DNA from: Trichoplax adhaerens
Taxonomy: Eukaryota; Animalia; Placozoa
Reading direction: 5' to 3'
DNA: 64,000 bases
Assembly (NCBI RefSeq): GCF_000150275.1
Contig: NW_002060948.1
Coordinates: 4,316,787 to 4,380,786, forward strand
Positions within the stretch are counted from its first letter, which is position 1; every line of letters begins with the position of its first letter. Shown in pieces: positions 7,488 through 62,513 of this stretch. The translations under genes and the position numbers were made by a program. The notes beneath the pieces are model-generated. The model had not been told where the DNA came from. It searched no databases and saw only the letters and a program-made list of their open reading frames with translations.

Positions 7488-10400
7488 TTAGAACATAGAG
7501 CTTCGATCTAACTCAGCATACTTGCCATTATCATCGTGACTTGACTGCAAATGGATGACTCGCTTAACTTCGCCAGTTTCAGGCAAAGTTTGAAGATAGA
7601 CTTGGTTATTACGATTTGACTATGAATAAGTCAGTTATTAAGAGAGGGCATCATTATTTGCAGTCTTATCAACGAAAGACAATTTTAGCCAGTAATCGTT
7701 GGCAAAATATAAGCTAGCCATTTTGGTTATTTATGGTCTACCTGATTATCTTTTGCAGCGAATTTCAAAGTCTGATAGATATTTTCAGCTTCTGATTCTG
7801 TAAATATAATATTAAGTAAACGTGATATTGATGAAGATAATGATTTAATAGATGGCACTAAGAACCGTTTTAAGATATTGATTCATTCCACATGCAGTTA
7901 CTGTACATCTGCAGTCAGCTCTTTCCGCATCGATTTTTTAATTTATAAATTGCAAATTATATTCATTATGCAGCTTACCATGGATATAGTTTCCAGCTGA
8001 CCGATTTTGATTTTGTTCACTTCCATGCTCATTTTCATTTACTTGGTTACAAGGTGTACTTATTGGTAGACTAGGTGGATTATAACCAAATTGTAAAGCT
8101 TCGTAAACCATACTCGCTCTAGTTTCGTTGTCTAGATATGGGTGAGGACCTATTATTAGGTAATGCAAATGCTGATATAATTTAATTACCGCGCAGGAAG
8201 CTTTCATGATTATTCGAATTCTTTCACACCTGATACCGTTACTTATGATTTCATTAATTATCAATATTTAGTCTCTGTTGTGTTTTATATTTGCATCCTA
8301 GGATTACCTTCCTGTAAACTTCTGACTGGACTTACGGAAGCATACACATCATCAGCTGGAGAAGCGTTTAACGGATCAGAATTGCCATCTTGCACTGTTG
8401 CCGTTCCATTGACAGGCATACCATTATCTCTCTCATACGTTCGCATCGAAGATCCCGCATTGGCCATATCAGCCATATCAATATGTTCTATTCTATTTGT
8501 GGTATACAGTTCTAGATGCTAACAATTGTAAACCAAAAATTTAACACAGAAGGCTGCAGAATTTACATATTATTAATGAATCCTAAAACTCAAGTTTTAT
8601 CTAACAGCTATTGGAGTTCCAGGTCTTCGATTTGGGTATTCATCAGGATCATCATCATCTTCCGCTTTGAGTAACGATCAATTAAAAAATTAAAAATTAA
8701 TTTGCGGTCTATTATATTACGTGAGATTTGCAAGATTGCATTAAGTAACCATGAATCAGGTTTAATTATCACAATATACGGTATAATCAGTTTAATTTAC
8801 ATAACATCGGAGTTAATGTCATTGAACGGGCTGGTCGAGTCGGTTTATTATTGAAGCACCTTAAGGAATTTGGGTAGATAAATAAAGATAATTTTAGTTT
8901 GACATCAAAAGTGATTTTAAGTTTTAACTGCTAATTCTGGACGAATAATTCATATAAATATACATTTTGCTTCGTCTCTTGCAGAATAAAACGGCAATCA
9001 ATAATAGGATTATTACTAATAAGCCTCCACTACTAGCTCCGGCAATCATGGCGACTTGTGCCAGTACCGATACTGTCGGTTGTGGTCCTGATGTTGGAGA
9101 ATTGGCACATGTAGTTTCTATGTTAATTATAAATGTTAAATTCTTACTGTTGATCAATTAGTATTAGTAAGAGTTTTTCTTACTAAAGTCCTATATGTAA
9201 AAATAAAACAATTCTTATATTATTCCAAATTGATCTAAATCACAAAAAGCAATTCTAAATGACCGATAGAAAATGATTAAAAACCTATTTGCCCTTAAAA
9301 GATCTTCCCTAAATTCAAACCACCACTTTCGAAGTTACCCTCTTCAAAGTCGTAGGCAAAATGTTTAATTATTATTTGCCGCAACTTACCTATTACGTGC
9401 TTTACAGACTGACGGAATTCTTTATACTCATTCGTGGCTTTATTGACTTTTAATATTATTGAAACCTCGTAAGTTACGTTTATTCCAAGATGAAACAAGT
9501 TAATACTGTTGCGACCAGACTTTGGAATTGACGGTAATGTGTTCAGGTTCTGTTCGGTTAGTTTTCTGTACTGAACATGAAGATCAGCCGCTCTGTTATT
9601 TTGAAAGTTATTAATGTTCCATTCGACTTTAATCGTAGAGCAATTGAATTCAGTAATTGTTAAATTTGTGATTGATGTCGGCAGGATACTATTACCTATA
9701 ATGATGATGAATTGTTGTTACCGTCTTAACTATCAATAGCAAGTCAAGGTAGTGTAATGAATATTTTTGTTTATAGCTGCTGCTTAGGATTTACCACTTT
9801 TGTTAGTACAATTAATGCCTGTGTAGCCATTTGTGCAGTTACAGCTATATTTAAAATTCCGCACAAAATTACACTTTCCTCCATTCTTGCAAGGAGAAAC
9901 TCTACGGCATGGATTAGCATCTGCAACAGAAATGAGGACATAAAATCTATTAGCGACACGCTCACTCAATAATTAACTTAATATACTTTACTGCTATTGA
10001 TCAAATACTTAATGAATTACTAAAATTGTTTAAAAGAAAAAGTTGTTTAATTCTAATTATACTGCAGTTTATATACAGTTTATAGTACAAAAACTTTTTC
10101 AGACTAATTTCATTTATAATCATGGATTGCAAATTAACGACATCGACAAGAACTAATATATTTGCTATCAGCGCATCAGAAATCATTCGAACCCTCAGAT
10201 TCTGAGAGCGATCATTTATACCAAACAGCGTCTGGAACACTCATTACATTTACTGCTACGAAGGGCTTCACTTTATCATAACTTTGTTACAGAATTTTAC
10301 TTACCATCTGTGCAATTCTTGCCGGTATAACCCGATATACAATCGCATTTATATAAAAATCCTGCAATATCGTGGCAAGTAGCACCATTAGTGCAGGGCA

Positions 10401-13400
10401 ACCGTGAGCGACATATGGACTGAACTAAAATCGCAAATATCAAGCAGACATATTACCGAGACAATCATTAAGAAATATCAAAATTATCATGTCAGTAGCT
10501 AACCGCTAGAACATGTTTTGCCAGTGTAACCTGATGAACAGTTGCATCTGTATTCGTAGTTATTTAGGTAAATGCACGTTCCACCATTTTGACATGGTTG
10601 ACTTGAGCGACATAAATTAGCATCTAAATTAATAACATTTAAATCAGATGATTTTACGTGCAGAGTATTCACTTTGTTGCAGCAATGATTTCTATATGTA
10701 AACTATACTATCATAAACTATTTCTATCATACAGTTCTACTGAGTATTTATTTAAAATAAATGGTATAAATCAAGAAATAATAACTTAGGTGCGGATTGA
10801 TTTCGTTAAATTATAATTTCCAATTTCAACATGTACAACAATAACCATATATTATTTATAGTATGACCAGGCGATAGTTTATTTCGCTTTTAAATTATAA
10901 AATTTTGAATTATCAGGTATAAGCTTATTTCAAGCAGTATTTCATATAATATTCTCAAGTGAGATACGATAAAAGGTTATCAATCTTGCTTATTATATAG
11001 GTTCGCATGCCACTTGCTGGTTGATAGGATATTTGATAAGCACTTATTGAAAAATTTAAAAGCAATATAGCTGAGTAGGTTTACAAATAAGAATTTCTTG
11101 TTACCTATAGAACAATTTACGCCTACATAACCAGTCTGACAGGAACAGTTATATGAGTGATCTCCGTTGAAAACTTACGAGCCGCCATGTTTGCATGGTG
11201 AAATCGTTCGACATGGGTTAGTGTCTAAGATTGAGCAAACGACTTCGGTTATTAAGAATACAAGGGACTAGTAATAATAACAATTTCGATAGTATATAGT
11301 TCATCATTGAGGTTATTTAAGCACATTTTACGAATTTCCTTACTATGAGAACAATTTTGGCCGGTATAACCAGGTTTACAATTGCATCTATATCGGTATT
11401 CTTCGATATCATGGCAAGCGCCATCATTAGCACAGGGTGAGCTCGAACGACATACGAACTGGTCTGAATTATAAATATTATCTAGCTTTAATTGCTATAA
11501 TAAGCGAAAGTCTTCAATGCTATTTCTTTATTTACTGACCGATAGAGCAATTTTTGCCGGTGTAACCAGATACACAATTACATCTATATTCGTTGTCTTT
11601 TATGAAAACGCACGTTCCGTTATGATGACACGGTTTGAGTGTACGGCATAAATTAGTAACTAAATAAAATAGAAATTATTACTTTGAAAAGTTTCCAGTA
11701 ACAAGATAAAATATCCATGAATGCTTCCGACTGCACTAAGAATCGTCGTTGTAGTAGGATTATCATTAATCTTCAACATAAAATAACTGCGATTCTTATG
11801 ACAACCATAGTCGAAGGCCATGAGCTCTGATGGATAATTTTACTTCACCAAATAGCTCCAGATAACAAAGCATGGGTATTTGAATAGTATTAATATCAGA
11901 TTTATCTATTTAAGTGACTGAGCTATGATAAAACTACTCAAATTAGGTCATTAGGACTCAGCATGCTAATTTAGAGCTATACATTGTTAAATACTAACTA
12001 AAATTAAGATACTTCAAAATAGCAGGGAATCATGATTTAGCACTAAATATGCGCTCAATTGTAGTAAATCACACCATCCTAAATACTATTTATTTAATAT
12101 TATAGACAAACGTTAAATCCTAAGTAAAGAGAAAATCATTTCCCTAAGAGTAATAATTAAATTGTTTTATATTGGCGTCATACCGTCAGTACAATTCTGG
12201 CCGCCATAACCAGTAATACAATTGCAAGTATAATCATAGGGTTCTATAAATTCGCATGTTCCATTATTTTTGCAAGGAGAATTTTGCCTACAGACATTGG
12301 TGTCTTAATCATGGCGAGAAAATTTAATAATCATTATTTCAATACGGAATAAAGGAGAATAAAACAATATACCTTCTGAGCAGTTTTTTCCAGTATAACC
12401 GTTGCTGCAATTACAGCTATATGAAAACTCCGCTAAATATTGGCAGGTACCATTATTTTCGCAAGGATTGTGCTGACGGCATTGGTCAGCATCTATACAA
12501 GTGACGATAAAATTAGGTAGTTATTTCAATATTAAACATTAATCCAAGTAGCGACAATCAGTTTCTTCCATTAACTACTTAGCTTGATTAATGCAAAGCA
12601 AACACTACCATTTTTTGTCATCTATTGACTGCTGTAATTACTACCAAGGTTATCATAAATACATTTTATATTTAGTACCTATTTCACAACGGCTGCCAGT
12701 CCAACCGACCTTACATTGACAAATATAGCTGTTGTTTCCATTGATACAATCTATGGCCCCATCGGTACAAGGATTTGATTCGCACTCATTAATATCTGCC
12801 GATTAATAGTAGCAAAGCTGAGGCCAAAATCTTAATTATTGGGTAAAATTTTTTCTAGGTCGAAGAATGTACTTCGAGATTTGAATTACCTTCCGTACAA
12901 TTTGGACCAGTAAAGCCATAAACACACTGACAACGAAAATTAAAATCTCTAATATTGTGACAAATTCCGCCATTCTGACATGGCGAGATAACCCGGCATG
13001 CAAATGTATCTGATAAAATAAGCGTATATAATATTTTTCGTCAGTTGTTTTATAAGATAAGATAGAAATAAATAAAAATGCTACATATCACCTTCTGAGC
13101 AATTTGCGCCGGTATAGCCCGGCTGACAAGTGCAATTATAAGAGTAATGACCACTATATTCGCAAGTTCCGCCGTTTTCGCATGGATTAAATGAGTGGCA
13201 TATATTTGCCCCTAAAGATTTAAACCTAACAATTAATGAATTATTTGTGGCAATATTTACAGTGACAAGCTGATGAAGACTTCTTTTTTATGTCGTAATA
13301 AACATATACGAATATTTATTAAGTAATCAATTTACCAATTGTGATTGCAATCAACATTTAAATTAAATACAAATATTTATAGTACTGCTCAGCCTTAACG

Positions 13401-16400
13401 ATTTAACTTACGCGTTTCGCATTGCCTGCCTGTCCATTCTGGAGGACATTTGCATATGTACCTTCCAATATCGTCACTACACTTCGACTCTGGATGCTTG
13501 CATGGATTTGATAGGCATTCATTAATATCTAACAAAGGAAAAAATAGTTCTCACACTAATCATATAATAAGAATAATTTAGCGCTTTGATCAAAATTTGA
13601 GGTAGTCAATTATATTCTACTGTCACAATTTCACTTCTGCGACAAGGTAACGTATAGTAAAAGTCTATAAGTAACTACTGACTTAAACGCCCTTTTACTT
13701 AACGTTAAACCTACACAGCAAAAGACTGTAAAGATGAAACTTTTATTAGCAAAGATACATCTACAACTTTTTACCACACTCTCAACTCAAATATTCCCGT
13801 TTATATAGGAACCGTCTAATTTGTAAACAACAACAGTATTGTTATTATACCTTACTAGGAGAAATATCTCGAACTGAGGTGCTCCTTACATAGCTTTTCT
13901 ATCAGTAAATATTTTGAATCTCTTACTCATACTTAATCTTAATCTAAGCTCGTAGGTTGTCTAATTCAGCTATCATCAACTAGAACTTAAATCATCTTAC
14001 TGCTATCTATCACACAATAACAATCAATATCAAATATGTAATGAACTATTTACAAATATCATCCACGTTAAGGCATCACTTATCTTACCTAGCACTACAA
14101 ATATGGATATTCTCCATACTAGCTACTACTGTACTTATTAAACTATCCTAATGACAAGGCAACACCGTAACATCTACCTCGGCTACAATTTTGATCAGTG
14201 TAACCAGATGGACAGGTACATCTATACTGGTAATCACCCAAGTTAGTACATGTACCATTATTTTGGCAAGGTGAATCCGCTAAACAAATGTTGGTATCTA
14301 CAGTAATCCAATGACAACATGATAATTAAATAAAGATGGCATGGATATTTCTTTGCTAATAAAAGGTACTGTACCATCCGAACAATTGATGCCAGTAAAA
14401 CCAAATTTACAGCTGCAATTGTAAGTGAACGGATCGATAAATTGACAAATTCCTCCATTTTGACATGGTTGTACAGTTCGGCATAAATCGGTGTCTATTG
14501 CAATACCAATAAGAACCTTTTAGTTACAGTTTCATTTAAAGAAATGATTTTATTGATATATAGTTTAAAGAAAATGGTAGAATCAAGTTCCGAATTACTT
14601 TATAGGATGATTTTTTATGAATTATCGTTTCGTGATTGGAGTTGCATAATTAATAACTGTAATTTTATATTGACCTTGAGTACAGTTTTGGCCAGTGTAT
14701 TTAGGCGGACATATACAGACATAAATGTAAGCTTCGATATACCGGCATTCTCCTCCATTTTGGCAAGGATGGTCCATACGACATACATTAGTATCTGTTC
14801 ACAAATTCGTATCTTAAGTACCGTAAGTCATCATTTGCACTTTAGTGATTATCAATCAATTATGCTATTAAAAAATTGTTTCCCTAACCTTCAGAACAAT
14901 TTACGCCAGCATATCCCTGACTACAAGTGCAGTTATAAGAGAATTTTCCTAAACTGTGACATGCAGCTCCGTTTTCACATGGATCACTTCTATTACATAT
15001 ATTAACATCTACAAAGAGAAAATATTATAAAGATGTAGTGAATAAATCTCAAGTTATTAAATCTGTTCAATCATACGGCACAAGTGTATGCATTTTGACA
15101 GCCATAAATTTTTGTCGTCATTGTTCTTTGCGATTACAATTTTCCAATTTGCAAATTAGAATTCAACATACTTGTATCGCAATGAATACCAATCCAATTT
15201 CGTGGACATTGGCACCGATATCCATTAACCTCATTGATGCATGTAGCTTGGTTATTGCAAGGATTAGATACACATTCATTGATATCTAAAGTATGAATGG
15301 AACAAATAGCCCTAGCACAGGTTAAGAAAGTTTTCATTCTAGCACGCTTATTATTATTATATTGCAATAATTCGACAGATATTATCTTGCCTTGTAAGCA
15401 ATGTTTTCCTGTATAGCCAGATTTACAAGTACAATTATATTGATAAGGTTCAAGAAAAGTACAGGCGCTACCATTGCCGCAAGGTGTCGTAGTTCTGCAG
15501 ACATTAACGTCTAGATACAAGAAAGATTACATAATAATAAGACAACTGTAATGTAACTTAGTATTGTGATTGTAGACTGTTAGCCATGTGTAGTATAATG
15601 TACGGTAGATATTTATCCTAAGAGATATTTGGTAGCTGTAACTATAGACTGTAGTGGTAGAGACTCTATGCTAGAGTACAGATGACTATATACAGTAAGC
15701 TGTTAAGTTACTAATATGGCTATAGGTAAAAATAGAACTGTAAATCATATATTAGGATATGGTTAATTCATTGTACTTTGGCTGGTGTGAATAATGTCTA
15801 CGTAAGTACTGTAGTCGTATCCATATTGGATTAATGATGGTCCGCAGTAGAATAGTCTTACTAAGAATAATTTAACTATGTGTAAAATAAGGTAAAAGGT
15901 TGCCATGCGGATTGTAGCTGCGAATGCTACGAAAAGTATAAAAGCATGCAACTTTAGATTATTCTGTTAGTTCGTTCTAGAAGTCTTTAGAAGTAGTATT
16001 CGGCTAGAGTAGAGCTGTGTAGTTAATCTTTATATAAGATTCAATAAAGCCCTTATTTTTCTAAAATTTGGAATTTCGTGATTGGTATATATCACAACAA
16101 CTAATCGGTAACTAATCAGTAATACAGCACTTACAACAATTGCACATCTTTAATATAAACGAACGCTATTATAATAAGTTCGCAATATTAAGAATCAAGA
16201 GAAATACATTCCGACTTGACACTTAATATTTTACCTTCCTCACAATCCATTCCAATATATCCTGAGAAGCAGCTGCAATTGTAGATGTAATTTGTCACAT
16301 ACTTGCAGATTCCTTGATTGTTACAGGGGTTACTTGTACGACATGGATTGGTATCTATAAATTTAGCGCAGATTAAATGAGCGAGATTTTTATTAAATAA

Positions 16401-19400
16401 TCCACAGTAAGATTTGTTGTAAGCTTTACATAACATTATCCCATTTCATAGATAAATTATGTCGCTATCATCGATTATAACCGAGCTCGCAATTTCGGCC
16501 TGTCCATTCTGAAGGACATACGCAGGTGTAATTATTAAGGCTATTAAGGCAAGTAGCGTTAACGTGTTTACAAGGAGTAGATGCACAATTTTTGATATCT
16601 TAAGGTAAAAAACAAATAGCAGTAGGATGTTAGTTTGATAAAGATTATACGATTTTTGATCCATGAATGAAGTACTGACTTACTTTGAGAGCAATTTTGC
16701 CCTGTATAGCCTGACACACATATGCAAGAATAGTCATAAGCTGCGTTATCTTGGCATGTACCACCATTTTGGCAAGGTGAGCTTGAACGACATAGATAAG
16801 TATCTTATTGTCAAAACAGACACTTTTATTAGTTATGATAGAAAATGCATTAAGTGAATATTATATATTCGGCTGTCTTCTTCTTGAATGCAAGAAAGCA
16901 CTAACCATTAGAGCAATTTTTTCCTACGTAGCCAGGTAGGCAACTGCAGTTGTAGTTGTAATCTCCAGTGTAACGGCAAACACTATGATTTTCGCAAGGA
17001 TTACTTCTACGGCAAATATTGGTATCTAAATAGTACAATGCGCCCATGCATTAGGCGTTTGAATATAGCAGGATCAATAGTATTAATCGTGACATATGCT
17101 AATTAATACTTTATTACGTGACAAAGGTTTCTAAACGTTACAATATAAACTAATTCCAAAATCTCGGATACCAACGAACCGGAAATGAATAATATATTTT
17201 GTGAAAAACGATAAATCGATATCATTTCAAGCACGATTACAAATTATAATGAAAAATTTTCTGCGGATATGATGTAGCCAAGATTTTGCTATTAAATTTA
17301 TTTACCATTTTGACAATATTTTCCGCCCCACCCCTCGATACATTGACAAGAATAACCATTAACACCATCGTTACATGTTCCTTCATTAAGGCAAGGGTTG
17401 GATATACATTCATCAATATCTGGAAAAATTTAAACAATTAGTGAAGTGATGCCGTAGCTTGTTCTAATATGTAATCGCTAAATAATTTATCAGGTGAAAG
17501 TAATTGAAATCATCCTAACTATGTTCACAATGGCTGCCATTCCATCCATCCTCACACCAGCAAGAGTAAGTGTTGTTAGCATCAATACAGATAGCATCAT
17601 TCAGGCAATTGTTTATAGCACACTCGTTAACATCTAAATCATTAAGTTGAACTAAGCTTAGCACGGATTTTTGAACCCAAATTTTATCTTTTTAATTAAT
17701 AACTATAACGCGAACTAAAGTTATGATATCAAAATTAGTTGTACTTATACTCACTATATTCACAGCGACTGCCGTTCCATCCATGGGCACATTCGCAAGT
17801 GTAGCTGTTAATACCATGCGAGCAGTTTGCTCCATGTAAGCATGGATTAGAAGCACACTCATTAATATCTAAATATTAAAGTTTAAACAATATTAAAATA
17901 TATCTTCATACTGAGAGCGGAGTAGTATCAGCGCCTTAATTGACTGCAGCTTAGAATTGTAAAACAGTGATTTACCTAGCTCACACATATTCCCATTCCA
18001 TCCAAACTGACATTGACAGGTAAAGTTACTGATGCCATTAATGCAGGTAGCCCCATTTAAGCATGGATTAGAGGTGCATTCATTAATTTCTACAAAATAA
18101 TCGATATCTATGATTCATTATCTACTATAGCAAGGAAAGTGAATTAATTTTCTATGAAAGACTACAGTAAGAATGAGATTTGTCTAACGAACTCCATCAA
18201 TTATTTTTTCCTTCCGTTACAATTTTAAAAGTGAAAAGTCATCAGCAACGAAATGCACATTTTAATTCATCAAAAACAATTTATGACAAAATAATATTAT
18301 TTAGAGCAGAAGTTCTCTTATTTTAATTTGAAAATTAGCTGCATTTATCGATGTTTCTTTTGCATGATGTATTAAAGCAAAGATCCGACCTTGTTCGCAC
18401 AGACTACCATTCCATCCATTTACACAATGACATTTATAGCCATTTATCAAATCAACACATGTTGCCTCATTCCAACACGGATTAGAAGAGCATTCATTAA
18501 TATCTAAGCGAAAACATGGAGGTGCATTGAAATTATAATTATTACAAAAGCTAAAATATGTCACTAATTCAAAAATATAGGCAGTTTCTTACAGAATTAA
18601 TTAATAAATATAATATATATAATTTAATTTCATTTATAAAGTTTGAACAGTCTCCCTAACTTTGTTCACAATGATCACCAGTCCATCCAGCTGCGCAGTG
18701 ACATGTATAGCTATTATTGCCATCAATACATGACGCTTCATGGAGGCATGGATTAGAGGAGCATTCATCGGTATCTAAATAATGCATTTCAATTATTCTT
18801 TAATATTATCAATTGCTACTTGCTATTAAAATGAATTTCTATGGCTAAAACTATACGTATTCAAATTGAAAGTAGCTTTATTTAAAGATGGATTGGGATA
18901 GAAATTTAATATGTGAAATAAATGAGCGAAATGCATCAAGGAAAAATCATTTTTTATCAATAAAATTAAATATATCATACTTCGTTCACACCGTGCCCCT
19001 TCCCAGCCGGCTAAGCAATGACAGGTATAGTTGTTAATCAAGTCAGTACAGTTAGCTTCATTTAAACATGGATTAGAGACGCAGTCATCAATATCTATAG
19101 TAAAATATGCAATTGAGAACTTAGAAATAATTGCGGCTGCCATATTACCAAAATTTATATATGTCTAACTTCGATCACATTGATCCCCTGTCCAGCCAGT
19201 TAAGCATTGACATGTATAATTATTGATGCCATTAGTACAGTTAACTCCATTTAAGCATGGATTAGAAGAGCATTCATCAACATCTGCGCCAAATTAGCAA
19301 GAAAATTACCGAACTGTATTAAGTATTATTGAGGAACTTTTAATTATGTTACTAACTATGTTGGCATTGCTTTCCAGTCCAGTCAACTAGACAATGACAA

Positions 19401-24690: not shown

Positions 24691-25032
24691 ATCAATATGT
24701 TGATTCCTGATTAAAGGTGCTGCTAAAGTAGGTAAACAAGTGGTTAATTCAAGGTTGCATACTATTTGTTGCTCCGAATAGTTTCTATATAGAGTGTGTG
24801 CAGTACATTGGAACCAATTTATATATATTATTTATGGCGAAGAAGCCCTCCCACTTCCTTGCGAATTGTTTTGTCTGCGAAAAATACCATTCATTACAAC
24901 TAAATGTTGACTCTAAAGAAAGTATTAAAAGAATAAGGCCCCAAAAATTATAGACTATAGATCAATTTAGGATGCTTCCGTATAATAATTGATCCCTCTA
25001 TATGAAAATAAGGTAAATTATAAATTTTACAG

Positions 25033-36500: not shown

Positions 36501-36962
36501 TTACCCAGAAACTGGTTAGAAATGGGTAAACTCCTAATCATTCTATAACCTCTATAAATGCCTCAAGAACGGTGCAGATCTGTTTGCATTATTCTCAGCT
36601 CAATTTATGAGTAGACACGTAACAAGATTTTCGAAACTATTAATTCATCAATATTACTTTTATGAAAATTAAAAGTGCACAATTTCATTGTCATTTTTAA
36701 TGTAAAAAATTCGGTCTTGTTAAATTCATATTTCAATAGATGGAATGTTGGTTGATAAATTAAAAATTTGCATTTACGAAAAATTTATCAGTTCCTATCA
36801 AAGCATTGTCTAAACTGATTTATACTTGTTGCTAAAATATCTAACGGCTAACTTATATTACTAATAGTAAATTTGAATCAATCTAGTTTGACTTTAGCAT
36901 ACCTGTGATGTTGCAAGAAGGAAGTAAAGCATCAACATTCCTCGATAGAAGACAATTGCCAT
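27509..36962 (-). CDS. Gene B: paralogous Delta/Jagged-derived membrane protein (SP, C2/MNNL, truncated DSL, ~22 EGF, 2 FN3, TM, tail), disrupted by a nonsense codon; possible pseudogene or null allele
   Basis: Exon 1 36903-36962 (MAIVFYRGMLMLYFLLATSQ). C2 exons 35638-35949 and 34913-35129; two single-EGF exons; 2364-nt EGF exon 31423-33786 with in-frame TAA at 33197-33199. FN3 31028-31327 and 29150-29452; TM 28821-28938 (VLAIVGAAVLATFIILVLAAVLIYKRRKK); tail ends ...SDITYDR* at 27509. Confidence 0.8.
29150..31327 (-). other. Gene B two FN3 exons (31028-31327, 29150-29452) with a Thr/Ser-rich linker exon (30785-30862)
   Basis: SLNCSTLEVSW...NNVNESMVYTITLKA and DLNCSAVQVRW...ITDLKRRVVYMFSV; linker DNTCHDTNVTRKPAISATTSAYTEST. 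Confidence 0.72.
29581..30142 (-). mobile_element. Solo LTR, family 1, copy 3 (562 bp, TSD TGTTA), in an intron of gene B
   Basis: TGTGAT...CATTACA termini, TGTTA on both flanks, near-identical to the other two copies. Confidence 0.88.
31975..33780 (-). repeat. Coding tandem repeat, 228-bp unit (two cbEGF, 76 aa), ~8 copies
   Basis: The DIDEC anchor recurs at 33667, 33439, 33211, 32983, 32755, 32527, 32299 and 32071. The 5' units are nearly identical. Confidence 0.92.
34913..35949 (-). other. Gene B N-terminal C2/MNNL domain plus DSL remnant (two exons)
   Basis: GTITMTLYWLDTNGQKDHEGIKCD...ICDKQLRFSLGTPSNFTRYWSFT...NPIVIPFIDEWS|GNLRVNVSVWDQD...VNFLVSCVNVFSGSRCEK. Confidence 0.78.
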
Positions 36963-50200: not shown

Positions 50201-53200
50201 TAAAATACTATACTGTATAGCAGCATAAATTTGTATAGAATATTACCAGTACATCCATCTTTTAACACACAGCTGGAGCACGTATTTCCGGACCATCCGC
50301 TGTTACAACTGCAATTTAGTTTAAATAAGAAATAGATACCAGTATAACCATTAGCCAACCAAAAATGTTTTATTCGAAATGTTATTAATGAAATACATCG
50401 TTTTTTTTAACGTTTTGAAACATACTAGCATTGGCCAGGTGAATTTGTGCAGTTAGCATGAGATAAATCACAGCCTGTTCTACAAATTGCTTTAAAAATA
50501 TCAAAATAGCTCTTATTATACAAGTTATAAATAAACATTTTTAGCCAATACACAAGAAGATAAAATTTGATTCATAAATAGCAAATGCTAACATAACGCC
50601 TTTATTGCTTATATTCTGTACCTGTTTGACAGCTTGAACCTGTCCATCCTGGTACACAAGAGCAATTGTAGTAATCAATAAAATTATTACATGTAGCCCC
50701 ATTAAAGCAAGGCGTCGATGAGCATTCATCAATATCTAGAGCAATCAACATTATACAAAGGCTTTAGATAAAATTATACTGTGAATACTTTTTTACTATT
50801 TCCTTAGATTTTAATATACCGTGCTATTTCCATTAATGCTACCCTATTTTATACGTGACTTAAACCAAGAGTTTACAGCTTAACAAGATTAAGTTTGCAT
50901 TCTGCTTGTCATACGCTGGTACAGAAACTTACCTGTCTCGCAAATTTTTCCAGTATATCCTTCTACACATTTACATTGATATGTATTAATTGCTTCATTT
51001 ATGCACGCGCCATCATTTTTACAGGGATTACTACGGCATGGATTTAAATCTAATGTAGTTGAATTAACATATGCTTAGTTCACATCTATAAATGATAATT
51101 CAACTAATCAGTGCATTTTTACAGGCAATACCGATTGATCAGCTCTCAAAATTGATCTTAAAATTTAATAGTAAGCGCAAACGAGATGCTGATTCTAAAA
51201 TAGAAAATCTTAACAAATCATATTTACCATTTTCGCAATTAGCACTTGTATAATTTGATAGGCAATCACAAGTATAATTAAATGGCCCTTCATAGGAACA
51301 TATTCCTCCATTAAGACATGGTCGACTTACCCTACAGAGATTCATATCTGCAGTAAAACAAGACGAATTATTTATCGCGACTGATGTTTTAGAATTACTG
51401 ATTATGGTGATCACTGGATAAAAAATAACCTACCAGTTGCACAATGAATGCCAGTATATTGCGGTAAGCATTGACAAGTGTAGTAATCAATAAGATTATT
51501 ACATGTTGCGCCGTTTATACAGGGACTTGATGAACATTCATTAACGTCTGTAATTTAATTAGAGTAACAGCATGACGTTAAGTTAACTTTTAGCATCTCA
51601 GAAATTAATCAATGAACTATTTAACTAAATTTCATTTAAATTTCTAAGCTATGACTGGTGGATAGTTTTCAAATTAGTTACGATAAAGTAGAAGCAATCG
51701 AAAGCTAAAAATAGCGATAACGATTATTATCATTTGTAAATTTATTAGAGTAACGTAGGACATTAGCTTAACTTTGCTCTTGAAGAAATTAATCATTAAA
51801 CTAATAAACTATATTTTACTTCATTTGCAAATCTATGGTGGACAGGTAATTTCAAAGGAGTTACTGTACAGCAGAAAAAATCTAAGCATAAGATAATAAT
51901 AATATTAACTATTGTCGCCTATCTGATAACATCTGTACTATAACTAAATTCATGTGGAATGTGTTTTTAATTTAATTCACAATAAAATCGTATAAATTTT
52001 ACATAGAATATTTAATTTCGATAGAGCTATTCTCACCTGTTTCACAGTTAGTGCCCGTATAACCTGGGAGGCATGAGCATCTATAGTGATAATTGCCGAG
52101 GTAATTGCAACTGCCTCGATTTTGACAGGGCGACATGGTTCGGCAAAGATTGGAATCTTTAACATCACATATATAGAAAGCAAATAGTTTACATCAATTA
52201 TATTATAAGCTAAATGAATGGCGAAAATTACATTTTATTCAAAATATCGACTAAATAATGCTTAGCATTAATTCAATAACTATATACATATATGTTACGG
52301 TGTAGGTATGTGGCGATGGCATCGTATACGCTATCAACCAGATTAAATTGTTATTATTCCAAAATTACTTCAAGTTAATTACATCAATATCCAAAATGGA
52401 AGTATAACATCACACGCATTATTTATATATTTATTTTTTCTATCATCCGAATCTAAAAGTTAACTTATAAAGCGCGCATACCATTTTCGCAGTGAGCTCC
52501 TGTAAACTGTTCTGGACAAAGGCATGTATAACCGTTAATATTATCCATACAAGAAGCATTAGTATGTTGACAAGGATTTGAGGAACATTCGTTGATATCT
52601 ATGAGATTTAAAAATTAAATGAGACTTTTTACTTTAAGCATACTAATTTCGAAGAGTTAAATTTCATAGTAAATGTAAAACATGTAGTACGTATAATGTG
52701 CTCCAATAGCATTAATTATATCTTGATATTATAAATTTCTTTGAATTAAACTAATCAAACTCATTATATGAAAGTTATCTCTTCGCTGCATCGTGCCAAA
52801 AGCTATATCACACCAGAATTTTAATGCATTAAAAACTTCATTGACAAAATATCATCTTTTGAGTATAATTATCAAAATTATGATTTGTGAGAAATTTTAT
52901 AGATAAATTCTAAAGATGCATATGTCACTAAAACAACATTTAGACAAATTAGCAAATTTGTAAATGAGGTCAATAATCATAATGAAAATCGACTAATCTG
53001 GATACATAAATTCACAATACTAGTTTAACTCAGTTTAATTTCGAACTCTATGAGACTGTCTCGTTAAAATAATATTTCAATCAAGAGCTGTCTTCATTTA
53101 AACAAATATCCACTAGGAATGGTTATTTTATATATCTATCAATATATCTTCAACAAGTGACTACCTATACCAAACCAGACTTAAATTTTAATGGAAGTTA

Positions 53201-56200
53201 TTCAACGTGAAATCTAATTAGTCAATTGCTATGATCACAAGTGAATTTTCTTAATAAATTATCAAATTTTACTGCAGAAATTTAATTAACCTAGCATAAA
53301 ATACATAAAATATATATTTAAAGGAGCTTCTAATCTAAGAAAGAGCATTATATCTAAATTGACGGCGAATAACTCAAATTGAATAATAATACGGTGCAAT
53401 TCCATGAAATACGCATTTTATTGACATTTAATAAGTAGATTAATTACCTGTACCGCAATGCAGCCCAATATACCCAGGGACACATGAACAGTTATAACCA
53501 TTCAATTGATCGTTACAAGTTGCGCCATTTAGACAAGGGTTAGAGTCACACTCATCGATATCTGTCCAATTATTACAATAGAAACAATAAAATTAACAAA
53601 TATACTATAATAAAGCTGAAGACGTGCTTACATAATGGCTAACTTAAAGTTTTAATTGTCTATTATTTGGTATAAATCCAATATGCTTTGACTCTATGAA
53701 TTGAAGATAGCACTTACTTTGTTGGCAGTTCTTGCCAGTATATCCAGTAATACATGTACATTGATAATTAAAAGGGCCTGTAGAAATACACGTTGAGCCG
53801 TTTTGACAAGGATTGGCTTTTCGACATTGATCAGTATCTGATACGGCGATAATTTAGGGAGATATTAACAAATTTCATTGATGCATTAGGTTAACAGAGC
53901 TTTAACAAGAAATTTTAAAAATACAGACAGTCAAGGAAGTGCAGCATAGTCAAAGATTATCACTAAGGTATCTTGATATTAAGATGAAAAATAATATTTC
54001 CACAATAATACCATTATCACAATGGATTCCTGTCCAGTTTGCGGGACAATTACAGTTATATCCATTTATTTTATCTACACATGTAGCATTCTCATGTCGG
54101 CAAGGATTTGAAACACATTCATTAATATCTATATCAAATAAGCATGAAAAATGATCACTATTTTAAAGGCACAGTTCTCTAATGTAATTAATTTATAAAA
54201 TTTTGTGATCAGAAGACCTATCAATTACTATAAATAAATGAAACTATCGATTATAAGTAGGCAGAAAACTAACATAGTTTTCAGTATCTTAAGATAATCT
54301 AAATGGAGCACATTTATGTCTGGTAATTGATACATCTAGTTAGAACTAAAATCGCCAAATAGATCTATGATGACGTTAGAACTTCTGTCTTAATGTGATA
54401 GCTACTACATATTAATTATTCTTATTCTACCAATTTTTTTAATTTAACCCAACATTATTGATAGTATTATAAAATTATATAAAATACTTAATATAACTAT
54501 AGTGTAGTTCTTATCTTAAACTCAGACAATTGCATAACAACTGGCAGTAATTGGAAAGTCTAGCTGGCAGAAAGGTAAAATCGGCAAATTTTATCAAATA
54601 TTTTCACTCTTTAACTATTTATTGATAATTACATATTGTAGTGAATAGGCTTTTATAGGCATAGCGGATTGTTCTACTCTCTAATGCTACCATAATTTAT
54701 GTAACTACTGTAATTAGCTGAAATCACTACTCTTACGAGAGGAAAAAGTTAATTTAAATAAAATATGTTCTACATAATCTAACGAAAAGTATTAAATTTG
54801 AAATCTTTGGTCCGCATTCATTTATACTATTGCCATATCTATCAGACAGACAAATTACACTTACTCGATTCGCAATGAATGCCACTATACCCAGGTTGGC
54901 ATGAACAGGTATATCGTAAAGGGAAATTATTGCATGTTGCATTATTCTGGCAAGGATTGGAGTTGCATTCATTAACATCTGCGTATTAGAGTAGAAATTG
55001 TTATGACAATTTCGCAGAAAATCAGAATGAAATGGTAATATTACTTAAGAGTAAATACGAATAACCTTCTTCTCAAGATATTTTAACAAGTTATAATAGC
55101 AAAATTCTGTGTACATTGCATGCTTTACCTTGTTCACAATTTATTCCTGTGTATTCTACTGGACAATTGCAATAGTAAGTATAGGCTCCAGTTACTGTGC
55201 AAACACCACCATTTTTACAAGGTGAAGTAAGTCGACATTGATTCGCATCTAAATTTTATTTTGGATTATGATTAGTAATGGATAAACCAAAATTAAATGC
55301 CTTCATAATTCTTAGCCATTGCTTGGCTGTTTTCAAAGCTCAGCCAATTTTTTCATAAGATACCTGTTTCGCAAAGAGTTCCTGTCCAATCGAGAGGGCA
55401 CTTACATAAATATCCATCAACTTGATCTATGCAAGTTGCATACGGATGTTGACAAGGATTGGAAGTGCATTCATTAATATCTAATCACAAATAAATTAAT
55501 TGCATTAGGTTGTAATGTAATTACTATTTTATGACTACATTTAATCTGGAGTATTAGAGTTTTTCAGTTTAAAACATAAAAACATGGTGAATTCATATTT
55601 CAGCAAAATTGTACTTGTCTGGCAAGCAGAACCCGTAAAACCATTTTTACAAGAACAAGTATACGAATTAAGTCCGTCTTTACAAGTTCCACCATTGGAA
55701 CACGGAGTTCCAACGCAGTCATTGATATCTATAACAAAAGTAAACATAACCATAAGGTAAGAAGTATATTATTAACGCAAACTTTAAAAGTAGTAGCCAG
55801 ATTTTATCGTTATCTTATGGTTATGTGAAATGTGAGCGATGGTTTGTATTCCTTTCATTTATCCAGCACTGCCAGTCAGAAATAAGAAGTTTATATCATA
55901 ACTCACTTTGACTACAATTTTGACCAGTATATCCTGTAGCACAAGTACAATTATAGGAAGCGAGGCCAAGATATTTACAGGTAGCGCCATTTTGACATGG
56001 CGAATATGCGCGGCAATAATCGCCATCTGTTAAAATAAGGAAAATATGTATTCATCTATTTTTTGATGGCAAGATATTGTATCTACTTGCATCAGTTTAC
56101 AGTAAATTGAATATACCAGATATTTTTTTATATACAGTTACGTTAGCTTTACTAATAAAATCAAATTATGGCACTTAGAGTTTATTGTAGCATGCTGAGT

Positions 56201-59200
56201 TTTAAAATTTTAAAGTATTTCTAGAATCACAGATCTTACCAACTTCACAACGTGCACCAGTCCATTGTGCAGGACAGGCACAAGTGTAGCTATTTACTCC
56301 ATCATGGCAAGTGGAATAAGGGTGGACACAAGGATTCGATGCGCATTCGTTTATATCTGCAACAGAAATATTAAAATGATGATTATGTTCAGTATTATAG
56401 GATAACACGATTTCCTGCAATCATGATTCGATAATCAAGTCAGCGAGCGAAAGTGACTGGTTAGAAAACAGAAAAACAATCTTACTTGTTTGACATGTAC
56501 TACCAGTGAAGCCAGTCGATGTACAATTGCACGTGTAACTGTTAGATCCAAGAATACACTGCCCGCTATTAAGGCATGGAGTTGATGAGCAAACGGTAAC
56601 CTCTGAGAAATTAATAAAATTTACCTTTAAGAAAATCTTTATCTATATTTCATGTTATCTATCAGTTTATCTGTCACCTAATTCAATACAGATCCGCTAC
56701 ATACTTTCTGTAAAGACGATGAACTACATGTTATTAATTAACAAAATTTACCATTAAGAAAATCTACCCCTACAGTATATTTTACGTTATGTATATGTTT
56801 CATCTGTTATTGAATTGAATACTGATCGACTAAATAACTGCCATAAAGAGAACAAACTACAAGTTAGATCTAAAGGTTTAATGAAATACTCGCTACTTAC
56901 GGTCTTGACAATTTATTCCTGTGAATCCAGCTGGACAATTGCAGTTGTATGTTAAATCTCCAGTCGATATACATGTCCCACCATTTACGCATGGCGAATC
57001 TTTAACGCAAACATCTTTAACTTTTATAAACCAACAGTATATAAAAACTTATTACTTACTAATTCTTTAAAACATAATGGCTTCCTTTGCTCATAAAATA
57101 AAATTTATATCAAGGAAATTCTCACGTTTTTCGCATCGGGTGCCAGTCCAGTCGCTAGGGCAACTGCATGTGTAGGAATTAACATGATTATGACATGTCG
57201 CGTATACATGCTGGCATGGATTAGATGCACATTCATCAACATCTGAAATTGCATTCATGAAATTTGTTACAATGATACATCATTACATTCCAGCAATTGT
57301 ATTTACTTGGATTATAATTTTACTTAATAACGACGAATTTTGACCAATGGTTTATGTATCTCCCAATCAAAAACGGTACTAAAATCTCTGCAATGCGTAG
57401 TTTTACAACAGCAGACCCTGTAGACTTAGTTGTATGATCTATAATATTTGCATCATTTAACTGAGTTATACCATGACTTATCATAGACCAATAAAAGGCT
57501 AGATTGCAACTATCGAGGTTCATAGCTATTTGAAAATCAAATTTTAACCCATAAATTTACAGTATTCGATATTATCAGCTTGTAATTCCACTATGAACTG
57601 TAGTAGAACTATACAATTTGTAAAGATGCTATAAAATACCGGGTGTGATCTAAAAATTTAACAATTTTTTTAGAAAATGCCTAAAGCAAACTAAAAATTG
57701 CAAATGATTTAATTTACTACCCTATCACTTACTCTGTTGCGTGCTTACACAATAGCAATCTCAATCAATTTAGTTCGGTATCATATTTATCTATAGCCTA
57801 ATTATTATGAATCACGTTATGTATTTTTAACTAACGTAGTTGTTATTTAAGAAAACATTGAATGTAGCTCTTGATTAGAACGTGCATCGTATTGTAAGAG
57901 GGTATAATTATCGCAATTTACCATCTTGGCAATTTCTGCCACTGTACCCAGAAGGGCAAACGCAAGTATAATTGAGAGGAGATGGCACGCATGTACCTCC
58001 ATTGGTGCACAAAGTAAATACACGACAAGCATTGATATCTAGAAAATAATAAATGTTTATAAATATAACTTAAGTGCTTTATCAGTACCTTAGTATTTCA
58101 ATACAGACTTCTTGATTTGTAAATTAGATCAAGCAATTTATATAGCATTAGCTATTTATTTTCTATTAAGTGATTAATGTTACTTCCTAGTTGTTACTGT
58201 AGGATACTGTATACTTTAGGATAATAAGGCTCGGAGAATATTAATCTCATAGTAACTTACCAACTTGACACTGGGCTCCTGAATAGTATGTTGTACAAGA
58301 GCAAGTATAACTATTAATTCCATCGGTACAGTTACCGTTGTTTTGGCAAGGATTAGATGCACATTCATCAATATCTAATAAATTCCATTAAGTAACGTAA
58401 ATTACATAAAATTTGAGAAATTAGAACTAAAGTGAAATACTCGTGTAAATAAGATAGATAATAACATTACTGACAGACTTTAATCATTAAATTATTTTTA
58501 TTACTTGTCTCGCAGTGTAAACCAGTAAAACCACCAACACAAGAACAATTATAGCGAAATGGCATATTAACGCATGTTGCACCGTTCACGCAAGGGTTAG
58601 AATTACACTCATCAAAATCTGCAAAATATGCGTTCGATAACTGAATCATGAGTCTAAACAAGCCAAGTTGATAACAACTGACTATGTGCTTCTTACCTTG
58701 TGAACAATTTTGGCCTGTGTAGCCTGTAGGACACAAGCAACTATACGTATAGATGCCAGTGTAAGTGCAGACGCCGCCATTAACACATGGAGAGCTAACT
58801 CGACATAGATTACCATCTAAGTGAAATTATAGAATATTACGAATAAAGCTCTTTAGAAATCAATTATATTAGTTAAAGATATCAGAGTAACAGAATAATC
58901 GGACATTAATACTTTTCGTACCATTTTCACAGCTGGTTCCAGTCCATTCTGCGGGACAATTGCAAGTATATGAATTTATTCCATCAACGCACGTAGAAGA
59001 TTGCTGACATGGATTAGATGCGCACTCGTCGATATCTATTCGTATATCAATTTAATGCCATTTTAGCAAAATCAAACTCAATGCATGCCGAATAAGTAAG
59101 GCAATAATCGTAACAGCTGAAATATCCCACGCGTGTAGATTACTTAAGGATAAATATTATAAGTATCTTTGCTTTGTTAACGAAGAATATTCAATTTCAG

Positions 59201-62200
59201 ATAATCGGATTTTGCTTACTTATTTCACAATTTGTACCATTAAATCCAGTAGCACATACACATGAATATGCATTAGGGCCGGTGTTATTACACGTGGCAC
59301 CATTCAAACAGGGCGAACTCCGGCACGTATTTAAATCTATAAAAATGGCATTACTTTTAGAATGTAGCTGATATTAATTGTCTTTGTGCAGCAACTTTTG
59401 TCGATAATAAGAAAAAGTATCATTCCTAAAATCTAAAAATAAACTTTATATATGATCTTAAGGAAAGCAGTAATCTTAAAATTACACTGTAGTATTGTAG
59501 TTATATAAAATTATTAATAGATGAAGAACTCCATGTAAGAAGGCACTTTCAAGTCCCGGATGTAGATAGCTTGTTCTTATCGTACCTGTATTACAGTCTA
59601 TCCCAGTCCAAGTACTTTCACAATCTACACTAACATTTATTCTAAATTGCGATTTATCGGAAATTGGCCTTGTCCCTATCATAGTAGCTGTTTCAGAAGC
59701 TCCTGGTACAGTATTAAAGCGTTGGGTAAATCGATCAATAAGACTGTCTGTACTACCTACGTAGTTTTTGTCCATTGCAGTCAAATGAACATTGACAAAA
59801 CCCTGACATTCAAGAACAAGAAACAGATATCAGATAAATACTACTATATTAATTCAAAGATCATATTTCAACTTTAGAATGTAATTTCTTTATATTTACT
59901 CTATATTTTTCATTGATGGATCCACGGTACGGATTGGTAATATTGTCAGCAGTTAGAGCTTGACCAACTGTAAATTGTATCGAAGATGATGCATTCCAAA
60001 CATTCGTAGTTAGTGAACCGTAGGTGCAAGGGCTGCTTACAGTTAAATTATTGCCACATAAAGTGAAATAATATCCACAAGAACCACCATTGCAGAGTGT
60101 AGTATTCCAGTGACTTTGATTATTATTTATATAGCTTTGAAATTCGTAACTGATGTAGGCATGCACATCAGCTTCTACATAACACTATAAAGTGAAGATG
60201 TAAAGTTACATATTTCAAAAGGCATGCATTTCCTCAAAAATATAAATATTAAAAACAAAAGGCCTACGGATAAAATTAGAATTACGAACAATTTCCACTA
60301 TGTCAATTAGACTTAAAAGTATACATTTGATATGATAAATATTAATCATTGCACTACTTTAGTTATCATAAACTGATCAAGGTAAATTAAAGAGGCTAAT
60401 TGAAAAAATGATATTGACCATGATCCTTCAAACATCGATCTAAGCCTAAAAACACCTTTTTATCCTTAGCTGAATATTATTTCAAATACAAAGGTAAAAT
60501 GATTTGTATCTTAGACGGAATCATGAAACGTAACCTAAATCTAAAAATCGAATTTACTATCTAATTGCAATAAAATTTAAATCGAAAGAAAACGTTAGTG
60601 GATAGTAATTGCTTTTATTACAATTCATTTTGATTCTAATGTTAACGAAAGATAAGAACTACCTATTAACAGGAAGACTTCACTTCATATACAACTGGCA
60701 AATATCATCAGCCATCTTACAAGTTACTATAACTTCCTAAGCAATACAGTAGGAGCTTCTGCTAACACCGTAGTGATTTATATTATCGTCTATTTCCAAA
60801 TGCAGCATAGATAACAACTGACTACATTATTCAGATACTTTCAGTCTACATAACTATTAAAATCATCATGAAAGCTAAGATATCTCTACTAATATAGGAT
60901 CTCTTATATTAACGTCAACAGCTGTTAAAGCTAGTTAATCTCACTAACGTTATGCTAATTGTTATCGAAAAAATTATTCGGCCAGCACGAAAACTCTGAT
61001 TAATTAAATTGGAATATCGCATTTGTCTATGATGATAAATTAATATCACTAGCATCGCTAATAACTAACGTAACATTTAATCTTGTCGTCTAAAAAAGTG
61101 TACTTAGAAACGTAATAGCTTCAAATTATCGACTGCAAAGCATTAATGACCAACATTTTAGACTATAGGATTCACAAAATGCGAGTAATAACATCGAAGA
61201 TTGGCTTATTGCATTTAAAAAGACTTTTGCTTATTAGAAATTTAGCATTCTGTTACAATCACAAGAGCACGAAATTGATGGATTCATTTTCTGAAGCACT
61301 TATTAATTTAAGCCTTACTGTTTTAGCTATTATTTCTAGGCAATTCTAATAATTAATTATAAGCACCTAATACTAAATCTATAACTTTATAATCATTTTT
61401 AGGTCATCTCCTGACTGGAATGCTGATGGAGAAATTAGTATTCGGCAATCCAATGTTTAGAATCCTTACAATCATCTACTAAATTGTAAAAATCAAAACA
61501 TCTGTTCACTGCTGAACTGCACAGCCGATAATTATAATTAAAGATTAACTTCCAGGACTCTTTCTAGCTACGTCTATAGTACATAATTTAAGAATTAACT
61601 TGATAAATAGTTAGGATATATCAGTGAGATTAAAGCATTTGTATTAAACTAAAGTTAAATTGCTTAAAGCAATTATCTTACTTATCTTAAAATTACATAT
61701 CAATAGAAAAATTAACTTTTATAGATAATTCGGGGTTAAATTAAAATGCTCAGAAAGGGTAAGTTATCCGCTCGGGACTTATATCTAACTGTAGTTGTTA
61801 TTCAGAGACATTATAGCTGTCGGAATATAATTTATTATTCATAGACCCTCGGATCTTGCCCAATCATAGTCAATTATAACATAATTAATAGTCAAGCAAT
61901 GCATGAACTGTTATTTTTCTAGCTAATAAATTAATCAATGGCGTTTTTATCAGTTTCTTTCTTCATATTCATCAACAATTGAGAACCGACCCGTGCATCT
62001 ATCAAATATTAAATACTCAATGACATAACTGATTTTAAGAACTACATTAAAATTTACAGTAATATCCAGGTGGTCAATAAGTTTATAGCCACGATAATAC
62101 TAGCTTACAAATTCATTTTATCTTAGATTAAGGTAATCTGTATTACTAATTTCCTGTAATGGGCTATATTTAAGCTTGCTTGAGAAAAACATGTAGAAAT

Positions 62201-62513
62201 TACTACATGTAAAAAGTATACGATAATGAGAGAAATTCTTATCACTTTGTTGGTAATCTATGTAGTAGCTACAATCATGAACAGTTTCTAGTAGAATTAT
62301 ACGTAAATTTTCAGGAAAGCTTTTGGAGATCGAATGTGTGATTCATGATTTTAATAGATTATTAAGGATTAGAAGATGCGATTTAAACGAAGAAAAGAAG
62401 ATAGTAGGAACCTAACTGTAATAGTTTAAATTGAAACTGAACTTTATTCTATGACTTACCAAAGTTGCGATAGTTAAGAATAAGTAAAGGGCGACAAACA
62501 AAATTTTCCTCAT
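41251..62513 (-). CDS. Gene C: giant Delta/Jagged-derived type-I membrane protein (SP, C2/MNNL, truncated DSL, ~50 EGF including an internal DOS pair, FN3, TM, ~500-aa acidic tail); no disabling lesion seen
   Basis: Exon 1 62460-62513 ([24 protein letters not shown]) joins CYVEA-DVHA in exon 59900-60184, then exon 59586-59802. 29 single-EGF exons plus three DOS exons lie at 47956-59335. 2244-nt cbEGF exon 45293-47536; FN3 44855-45145; TM 44588-44714; seven tail exons including a 23-nt micro-exon (44193-44215) and last exon 41251-42122. Confidence 0.85.
44588..45145 (-). other. Gene C FN3 exon (44855-45145) and transmembrane exon (44588-44714)
   Basis: [21 protein letters not shown]...IILRWK...[17 protein letters not shown], then [40 protein letters not shown]. 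Confidence 0.8.
45293..47536 (-). other. Gene C intronless exon of ~19 calcium-binding EGF repeats plus a truncated one
   Basis: Corresponds to the 759-aa ORF: repeated (D/N)I(D/N)EC.S.PC.N.G.C.D..N.Y.C.C..G(F/Y)TG..C, with O-glucose (C-x-S-x-P-C) and O-fucose (C-xxxx-S/T-C) consensus sites. Confidence 0.93.
50095..50489 (-). other. Delta/Jagged DOS-type EGF pair split over three small exons in gene C
   Basis: Exons 50426-50489, 50247-50308 and 50095-50166 splice to [66 protein letters not shown]. Confidence 0.82.
54650..54730 (-). mobile_element. Fragment of the 5' end of LTR family 2, in an intron of gene C
   Basis: The reverse complement gtagtgatttcagctaattacagtagt...ggtagcattagagagtagaacaatccgctatgcctataa matches the starts of 2351 and 21503. 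Confidence 0.6.
59586..60184 (-). other. Gene C N-terminal C2/MNNL domain plus DSL remnant (two exons)
   Basis: [14 protein letters not shown]...[13 protein letters not shown]...NPYRG...|[11 protein letters not shown]...LIDRFTQR...[16 protein letters not shown] resembles Delta-like PCTYGSAVTPVLG, NPIRF and LISRLATQR. Confidence 0.85.

Follow-up and report, generated by a model that had tools for sequence, protein, structure and literature searches.

Giant Trichoplax membrane proteins with a probable Notch-ligand C2 head, a vestige of the DSL domain, a long EGF stalk and membrane-proximal FN3 domains

What is encoded by three neighbouring genes of the placozoan Trichoplax adhaerens that begin like a Notch ligand and then run on into dozens of EGF repeats? 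The genes, here called A, B and C, lie on the minus strand of a 64,000-nucleotide (nt) stretch of contig NW_002060948.1, which we refer to as the window (G000:C1409:4316787-4380786). A reading of the window from its sequence alone had proposed a tandem family of receptor-like proteins that carry the C2 (MNNL) tip of Notch ligands on a very long stalk and signal inward through tyrosine motifs. We examined the locus within the whole genome (105.6 Mb in 1414 contigs, ~31% G+C). Taken as a whole, the best explanation is probably that the products of A, B and C are giant type-I membrane glycoproteins with a DSL-type Notch ligand as their ancestor. Spliced models entered only scripts, where they served to check reading frames, count motifs and build the head tree, and the Pfam, PDB and AlphaFold analyses were performed on single exons or on database proteins.

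Gene A spans 7488-~21038, gene B ~28800-36962 and gene C 41251-62513; gene A ends with the final base of its stop codon at 7488, and the ATG of gene C begins at 62513. All three follow one layout, consisting of a signal exon, a C2 exon of ~300 nt, a third exon of 217 nt, EGF repeats, one or two FN3 domains, a transmembrane (TM) helix and a tail. By chaining exons we confirmed that they are same-strand paralogs with common exon phases. Exon 2 (303, 312 and 285 nt in A, B and C) is phase 0 to 0 in each gene, and exon 3 is exactly 217 nt in all three, runs from phase 0 to phase 1 and is bordered by AG and GT. Exons that encode a single EGF are 114-120 nt long and phase 1 to 1 in nearly all cases, with the same AG/GT borders. 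Pairwise identity among the three heads is 18-26%. The bodies differ in size, as had been noted from the letters: the spliced models contain 34 (A), ~22 (B) and ~50 (C) EGF repeats, and the number of FN3 domains is one in A, two in B and one in C. A strict six-cysteine EGF pattern was matched 100 times on the minus strand (33 in A, 19 in B and 48 in C) and zero times on the plus strand. In each gene a TM helix followed by basic residues is clear.

Models of this length could be artefacts, such that the C2, EGF and FN3-TM parts belong to several shorter genes or to decaying pseudogenes and never form one protein. Some observations agree with that view. The public annotation of gene B is a fragment of 246 amino acids (aa), and the reference is interrupted by an in-frame stop in gene A and by another in gene B. 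When the large EGF exons of C and B served as protein queries, only EGF-rich proteins of other animals came back, and no identical Trichoplax protein was recovered within a length range of 0.55-1.75x; that range probably hid full-length models, so that the result does not bear on annotation or on the stop in gene B. Against an artefact, frames stay open across 44-45 canonical exons and the exon phases fit throughout. From exon 2 to the stop codon at 7490-7488, gene A reads through 1888 codons in 44 exons, with one reference TAA as the sole interruption. Gene C chains into 2781 codons in 45 exons with no internal stop, and the gene B frame runs through the TM exon with one stop.

RNA further argues against short or broken genes, because it joins the EGF, FN3, TM and tail exons of gene A and removes its stop. 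We searched the stretch 7400-13399 and found contigs of four runs from four studies that cover 7400-12795. They contain 19 spliced joints, 15 of which are listed; 14 of those listed are GT-AG on the minus strand, and the remaining one seems to be one base off, adjoining a variant. These joints agree with the predicted EGF exons and delimit the FN3 exon, the TM exon and six tail exons. A single 2343-nt contig holds the 3′ untranslated region, tail, TM, FN3 and EGF exons together. This contig continues for 738 nt past position 7400, which is either a long 3′ untranslated region of gene A or a neighbouring transcript. The in-frame TAA of the reference (11175..11177) falls at the third cysteine of an EGF in exon 11224-11105, and the RNA has TGT (Cys) at this codon, with 11175 T>A and 11176 T>C in every contig of the four runs. 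The TAA is therefore either a reference error or an allele absent from the RNA, and we rejected it as the mark of a pseudogene. We conclude that gene A is transcribed and that, in its 3′ half, the EGF, FN3, TM and tail exons do stand in single mRNAs, as the sequence-only reading had assumed. That the long models are artefacts is very improbable.

We now consider what the heads are. In each gene the C2 domain is divided between exon 2 and exon 3, and exon 3 also encodes the first loop of a DSL domain. The two exons lie at 20736..21038 and 20308..20524 in gene A, at 35949-35638 and 35129-34913 in gene B, and at 60184-59900 and 59802-59586 in gene C. The signal exon of gene B (36903..36962, MAIVFYRGMLMLYFLLATSQ) ends in phase 0 and is identical to the start of XP_002113804.1 (TRIADDRAFT_64025). 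That 246-aa "expressed protein" joins the signal exon of gene B to its exons 2 and 3, and our junction between the latter two agrees with it. The signal exon of gene C (62460..62513) also ends in phase 0, with the donor GTAAGT; for gene A a tentative candidate, with the donor GTGAGT, is predicted at 24622..24690.

Three lines of evidence identify the heads as the C2 domain of Notch ligands, in agreement with the initial proposal. First, a profile of 13 exon-2 peptides matched the C2 domain of Drosophila Delta (7alk) in the PDB at E=6.6e-7 and DLL4 at E=0.005-0.007; its matches to Jagged1/2 were at chance level (E=0.7-1). Second, the Pfam MNNL model matched seven of the 13 peptides, with a best value of 1.7e-7, and the gene C head by itself gave E=0.0017-0.0019. 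Third, the closest relative of the A and B heads is TRIADDRAFT_62484, a C2-TM mini-protein with 32-39% identity to them (39% to gene A exon 2). Its AlphaFold2 model, built from a 62-row alignment, has a predicted local distance difference test score (pLDDT) above 90 over residues 50-225, and its first 20 PDB matches are the C2 domains of Jagged1/2, Delta, DLL4 and Serrate. In addition, the MNNL exon of the canonical Trichoplax Delta on C1403 ends in "...FTWP|GT" in phase 0, and the intron sits at the identical place in A ("...GDWP|GT") and B ("EWS|GT").

We also compared the exon-2 profile with 1.84 billion representative proteins and obtained 204 matches at E<=1e-3. The 20 longest matches from other animals are mostly ligand-type proteins with MNNL and/or DSL, some of them with fibrinogen or VWA bodies, and none of these 20 has an fn3 domain. 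Three such proteins (P0069, P0095 and P0085) fuse MNNL and/or DSL heads to fibrinogen-C or VWA bodies, so that the mounting of ligand heads on foreign bodies is not confined to placozoans. The same search returned no protein containing exon 2 of A or C, and these two heads seem to be absent from the predicted proteomes of that representative set.

The DSL domain had been reported as missing. In a search of the whole genome with Pfam DSL (PF01414), the sole match above threshold was in the canonical Delta, and the window has none, so this part of the claim stands. It needs one amendment: exon 3 ends two residues past the motif C-x5-G-x2-C, which corresponds to the start of the DSL domain in Delta (VCDRHYYGPGC), and the first DSL loop is thus retained. 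The four remaining DSL cysteines have been lost from A, B and C. The canonical Delta (G000:C1403:1208815-1216400, plus strand) is the one gene of the genome in which Pfam finds MNNL (105 bits) together with DSL (71 bits). About 5.7 kb separate its MNNL exon from its DSL exon, and at least one small intervening C2 exon was not located.

Gene C retains a second ligand feature. Between its head and its later EGFs lies a Delta/Jagged-type EGF1-EGF2 pair of the DOS type (50095..50489; exons 50489-50426, 50308-50247 and 50166-50095), and EGF1 is interrupted by a phase-2 intron whose position matches that in the canonical Trichoplax Delta. This pair sits 24 EGFs away from the head, and a DOS-type cysteine pattern is absent from every minus-strand frame of genes A and B. 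Features of Notch receptors are lacking, as the earlier description had it: the genome search with LNR (PF00066) gave no match in the window, and the A and C tails are acidic and of low complexity with no repeat, although no ankyrin hidden Markov model (HMM) was run. Similarly, there is no Jagged-type cysteine-rich or VWC region, inasmuch as the last EGF leads straight to FN3 and no other cysteine-rich frame is seen (no VWC HMM was run).

The DSL domain binds Notch EGF11, and in solved ligand complexes C2 contacts Notch EGF12. With the DSL missing, canonical trans-activation of Notch by A, B or C is unlikely. The proteins could instead be non-canonical modulators, either DLL3-like cis-inhibitors or co-ligands of the DOS type such as DLK1 and C. 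elegans OSM-11, which would touch Notch through C2 and, in gene C, through DOS as well, but would not activate it in the normal manner. The retained C2 and first DSL loop fit this alternative, as does the intact EGF1-2 pair of gene C with its Delta intron position, and the genome has one canonical MNNL+DSL Delta only. A protein atlas offered a further lead, and no more than a lead, in a neighbour cluster that is vertebrate DLL3 (MNNL and EGF without DSL in Pfam); the low-score leads from this atlas were fn3 families or Delta-like families, never both in one. Weighing against modulation, DSL and DOS are both missing from A and B, and the 24 EGFs of gene C break the contiguous C2-DSL-EGF1-3 surface seen in solved complexes. 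Moreover, no Notch modulator is known to have FN3 domains or a long stalk. We consider the modulator reading unlikely; a role as modulator or co-ligand is possible, above all for gene C.

Membrane-proximal FN3 domains had also been proposed, and here Pfam, the PDB profile and the AlphaFold2/Foldseek comparison agree. Each FN3 is encoded by one exon: 9390..9695 (306 nt) in gene A, 31333-31028 and 29452-29150 in gene B, and 45145-44855 in gene C. With Pfam fn3, the gene A domain scored 24.2 bits (E=4e-5), slightly short of the 25-bit cut-off; gene C gave E=6e-4, the second domain of gene B E=0.01 and the first none. A four-row FN3 profile was compared with the PDB, and 16 of the 18 chains listed, including the six best, are FN3 domains. 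The AlphaFold2 model of the gene A FN3 has a pLDDT of 86.7 and a TM score of ~0.7 to FN3 structures, and all its top Foldseek matches are FN3. The TM exons follow at 8962..9117 (A), 28938-28821 (B) and 44714-44588 (C); in gene A, RNA joints support both the FN3 and the TM exon. Gene B has a linker exon at 30862-30785, between its two FN3 exons. It also has an optional in-phase exon at 30569-30684 (minus strand) that encodes a hydrophobic stretch, CKELKPVLNKFAFVVSYAVAATFFLIMN, and then a stop. This could be an alternative last exon that yields a short-anchored or glycosylphosphatidylinositol (GPI)-type isoform ending past the first FN3.

Between head and FN3, the stalks are built in different ways. 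Gene A has 34 single-EGF exons (9795..20066; 114-126 nt, phase 1 to 1), which spliced RNA contigs confirm from 12795 downward. In gene B the EGF region (31423..34714) comprises two single-EGF exons (34714-34601 and 34187-34077) and a 2364-nt exon (33786-31423) with ~20 EGFs. Gene C has 24 single-EGF exons between the head and the DOS pair (50622..59336), and its later EGFs (45293..49625) occupy five single-EGF exons and a 2244-nt exon (47536-45293) with ~20 EGFs of the calcium-binding type. The large exon of gene B contains a 228-nt tandem array, each unit encoding two EGFs (31967-33769; 7.9 copies, 88% alike), and gene A contains a 187-nt tandem array of exon plus intron at 19144-19792. Stalks have accordingly lengthened in two ways, by an in-exon two-EGF unit in B and by an exon-plus-intron unit in A. 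One repeat of gene B has an in-frame TAA in the reference (33197..33199, minus strand), where its sister repeats have TAT (Tyr) in DIDECNYETC. Gene A has a lone GC-AG intron (donor AAG|GCAAGA, 15385-15391, minus strand); its other introns are GT-AG. Consensus sites are frequent in the EGFs. The calcium-binding and O-glucose consensus is present in 14 of the 34 EGFs of gene A and the O-fucose consensus in 16 of 34; in gene C, calcium-binding and O-glucose sites each occur in 34 of 49 EGFs and O-fucose sites in 26 of 49.

The proposal that the proteins signal inward through tyrosine motifs was compared with the sequences of the tails. The gene A tail, ~235 aa long, is encoded at 7488..8857 by six exons (8857-8801, 8664-8606, 8518-8306, 8147-7979, 7797-7742 and 7619-7488), with RNA joints in four runs. 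It is acidic and has 11 tyrosines in 235 residues, with YASV, YEAL, YQTL and YAEL. The predicted gene C tail (41251..44482) is ~520 aa long, acidic and serine-rich, and its six exons are in phase to a 290-aa terminal exon; it contains the YxxPhi motifs YLEL, YVEI and YQQL. An acidic frame of 293 aa at 42132-41254 was considered as a separate gene and set aside, as it is predicted to chain in phase with the gene C tail exons. Compared with shuffled sequences, YxxPhi motifs are not enriched in either tail (4 against 2.1 expected in gene A, P=0.13; 3 against 1.0 expected in gene C, P=0.06). The A and C tails contain no immunoreceptor tyrosine-based inhibitory, activation or switch motif (ITIM, ITAM, ITSM) and no NPxY, and by BLAST they match neither each other nor the gene B region. 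Inward signalling by tyrosine motifs therefore did not gain support from the tails.

How did heads and bodies come together? The exon-2 profile of A, B and C matched the genome at 15 places, and three of these are just upstream of the window genes on the same strand. At least six head-bearing genes form a same-strand tandem cluster within ~105 kb. In an unrooted tree of the heads, twelve DSL-less heads separate from the canonical Delta and from the ligands of other animals with support of 98/94. Within them, TRIADDRAFT_62484 joins the A and B heads (100/98), and the gene C head groups with two upstream heads, L004 (G000:C1409:4308217-4308489) and L005 (4272588-4272869; both minus strand), with support of 98/95. 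These two deep subclades also include genes on other scaffolds. The L004 and L005 heads are near-identical, with zero branch length, which points to recent duplication or gene conversion. Between them lies a further head (4287006-4287290, minus strand) whose exon 2 has an in-frame TAA, and it may be a pseudogene or reflect a reference error.

The FN3 type of A, B and C has a different distribution. Within the genome it is confined to four copies in the window and one in a scaffold C1394 gene of the order SRCR-EGF-FN3-TM; the upstream genes L004 and L005 do not have it. The C1394 gene (967800-977300, minus strand; L016/L017) encodes SRCR domains, EGF triplet exons with a three-EGF exon periodicity, an FN3 homologous to those of the window (E=1.4e-10), a TM helix and, in its tail, "YEELYYPG". 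Another database protein, TRIADDRAFT_55383, also combines head, EGF, FN3 and TM. The bodies of A, B and C are thus of one kind, but their heads do not all come from one lineage. Because the FN3-type body is found under an SRCR head and because the A/B and C heads belong to different subfamilies, heads and bodies were probably recombined by exon shuffling. Such a pattern points to shuffling of exons, or to replacement of bodies, within the head family; its direction is not given by the unrooted tree.

Tandem clustering, rapid divergence and pseudogenes had been likened to immune or allorecognition receptor clusters, with adhesion or decoy-ligand roles called equally open. The cluster of at least six same-strand head genes in ~105 kb does resemble such loci, and the large differences in EGF number, the recent 228-nt tandem expansion in B, the one nonsense codon in B and the homologous body under an SRCR head elsewhere all fit. 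The two other signs fared less well. The heads fall into two old subfamilies common to genes on other scaffolds, so rapid divergence is not shown. When gene A was compared with RNA under a second organism label (~99.7% identity), exons differed by five synonymous and three non-synonymous changes in ~2.7 kb, which is no sign of positive selection. As for pseudogenes, the sole candidate is the nonsense codon in B. Local BLAST with the head, FN3 and tail peptides found no additional copies in the window and no relic head, FN3 or tail exons between the genes. The reference stop in gene A is contradicted by RNA, and the tails of A and C have zero ITIM or ITAM. Nothing in the evidence points specifically to immunity, and we regard an immune or allorecognition role under diversifying selection as improbable.

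A further alternative is that C2 is in placozoans a free-standing recognition module that has been shuffled onto unrelated bodies, EGF-FN3 here and a bare TM helix elsewhere, and that would work without Notch, for example with lipids or glycans of neighbouring cells or prey as its targets. We consider this account possible but rather unlikely. If true, it would point to a function of the ligand tip that predates Notch signalling or does not depend on it.

Our preferred reading remains descent from a DSL-type ligand, with the order signal peptide, ligand-type C2, one-loop DSL vestige, EGF rod, FN3, one TM helix and an unalignable tail. The rod, long, partly stiffened by calcium and probably O-glycosylated, would hold the C2 tip far from the membrane, where the tip may bind lipid or a partner in cell-surface adhesion or recognition. 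The YxxPhi tyrosines of the tail may serve endocytosis or phosphotyrosine docking. Several points weigh against this reading. In Pfam MNNL the gene A head gave E=0.06 and the gene B head no match, below threshold when taken singly, and the C2 status of both rests on transitive profile links and the paralogue model. Gene B has a nonsense codon in the reference. The RNA check covers the stretch 7400-13399, and the upstream halves of A and C, the C tail and gene B beyond its annotated fragment are predictions. The direction of shuffling is unrooted. Finally, because C2 contacts Notch EGF12 in ligand complexes, some Notch binding may persist, most of all for gene C with its DOS pair. Taken together, we consider that A, B and C are most likely adhesion or recognition proteins and not canonical Notch activators.

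Previous work credits Trichoplax with a single ligand. Gazave et al. 2009 (PMC2770060) reported a Trichoplax Delta, no Jagged, and EGF+VWC, and one Trichoplax Delta is likewise given by Najle et al. 2023 (PMC10580291) and by a 2025 survey (PMC12166595). In our literature search we found no description of A, B or C, no paper combining MNNL with fibronectin type III and none citing the three gene identifiers. Against the usual account of one Delta and no Jagged, Trichoplax has ~15 copies of the ligand head, which have lost DSL and sit on other bodies. Should these heads still touch Notch, placozoan Notch regulation would be more elaborate than has been assumed; otherwise, the C2 tip would have a Notch-independent function that is testable in a very simple animal. 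The locus also offers a clear example of exon-phase-compatible domain shuffling, in which the EGF exons begin and end in phase 1 and heads appear to have been recombined with bodies.

Three known systems are useful for comparison. Like A, B and C, Tie receptors and tenascins place EGFs and then FN3 at the cell surface, and a Tie2 FN3 is among the fold matches of gene A. Neither group is known to have a ligand-type C2 head, and A, B and C have no kinase, Ig or fibrinogen domain. DLL3, DLK1/2 and the C. elegans OSM-11/DOS proteins are ligand relatives without a working DSL, with MNNL in DLL3 and DOS in DLK1 and OSM-11. A, B and C resemble them in keeping parts of the ligand head without a functional DSL. 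These relatives are small and are not known to have FN3 domains or giant stalks, and none is known to have C2 dozens of EGFs away from DOS. The canonical DSL ligands, Delta and Serrate/Jagged, have in common with A, B and C an N-terminal C2/MNNL, EGF repeats and a single TM helix. Canonical Delta further shares the "C-x3-YYG-x2-C" start of DSL, the intron after "...WP" and, with gene C, the phase-2 intron of EGF1-2. The canonical ligands have a full DSL, 6-16 EGFs and no FN3, whereas A, B and C have only the first DSL loop, 22-50 EGFs and one or two FN3 before the membrane. In gene C, unlike in those ligands, 24 EGFs stand between head and DOS, and A and B have no DOS. The heads of A, B and C belong, with support of 98/94, to a clade apart from the canonical ligands.

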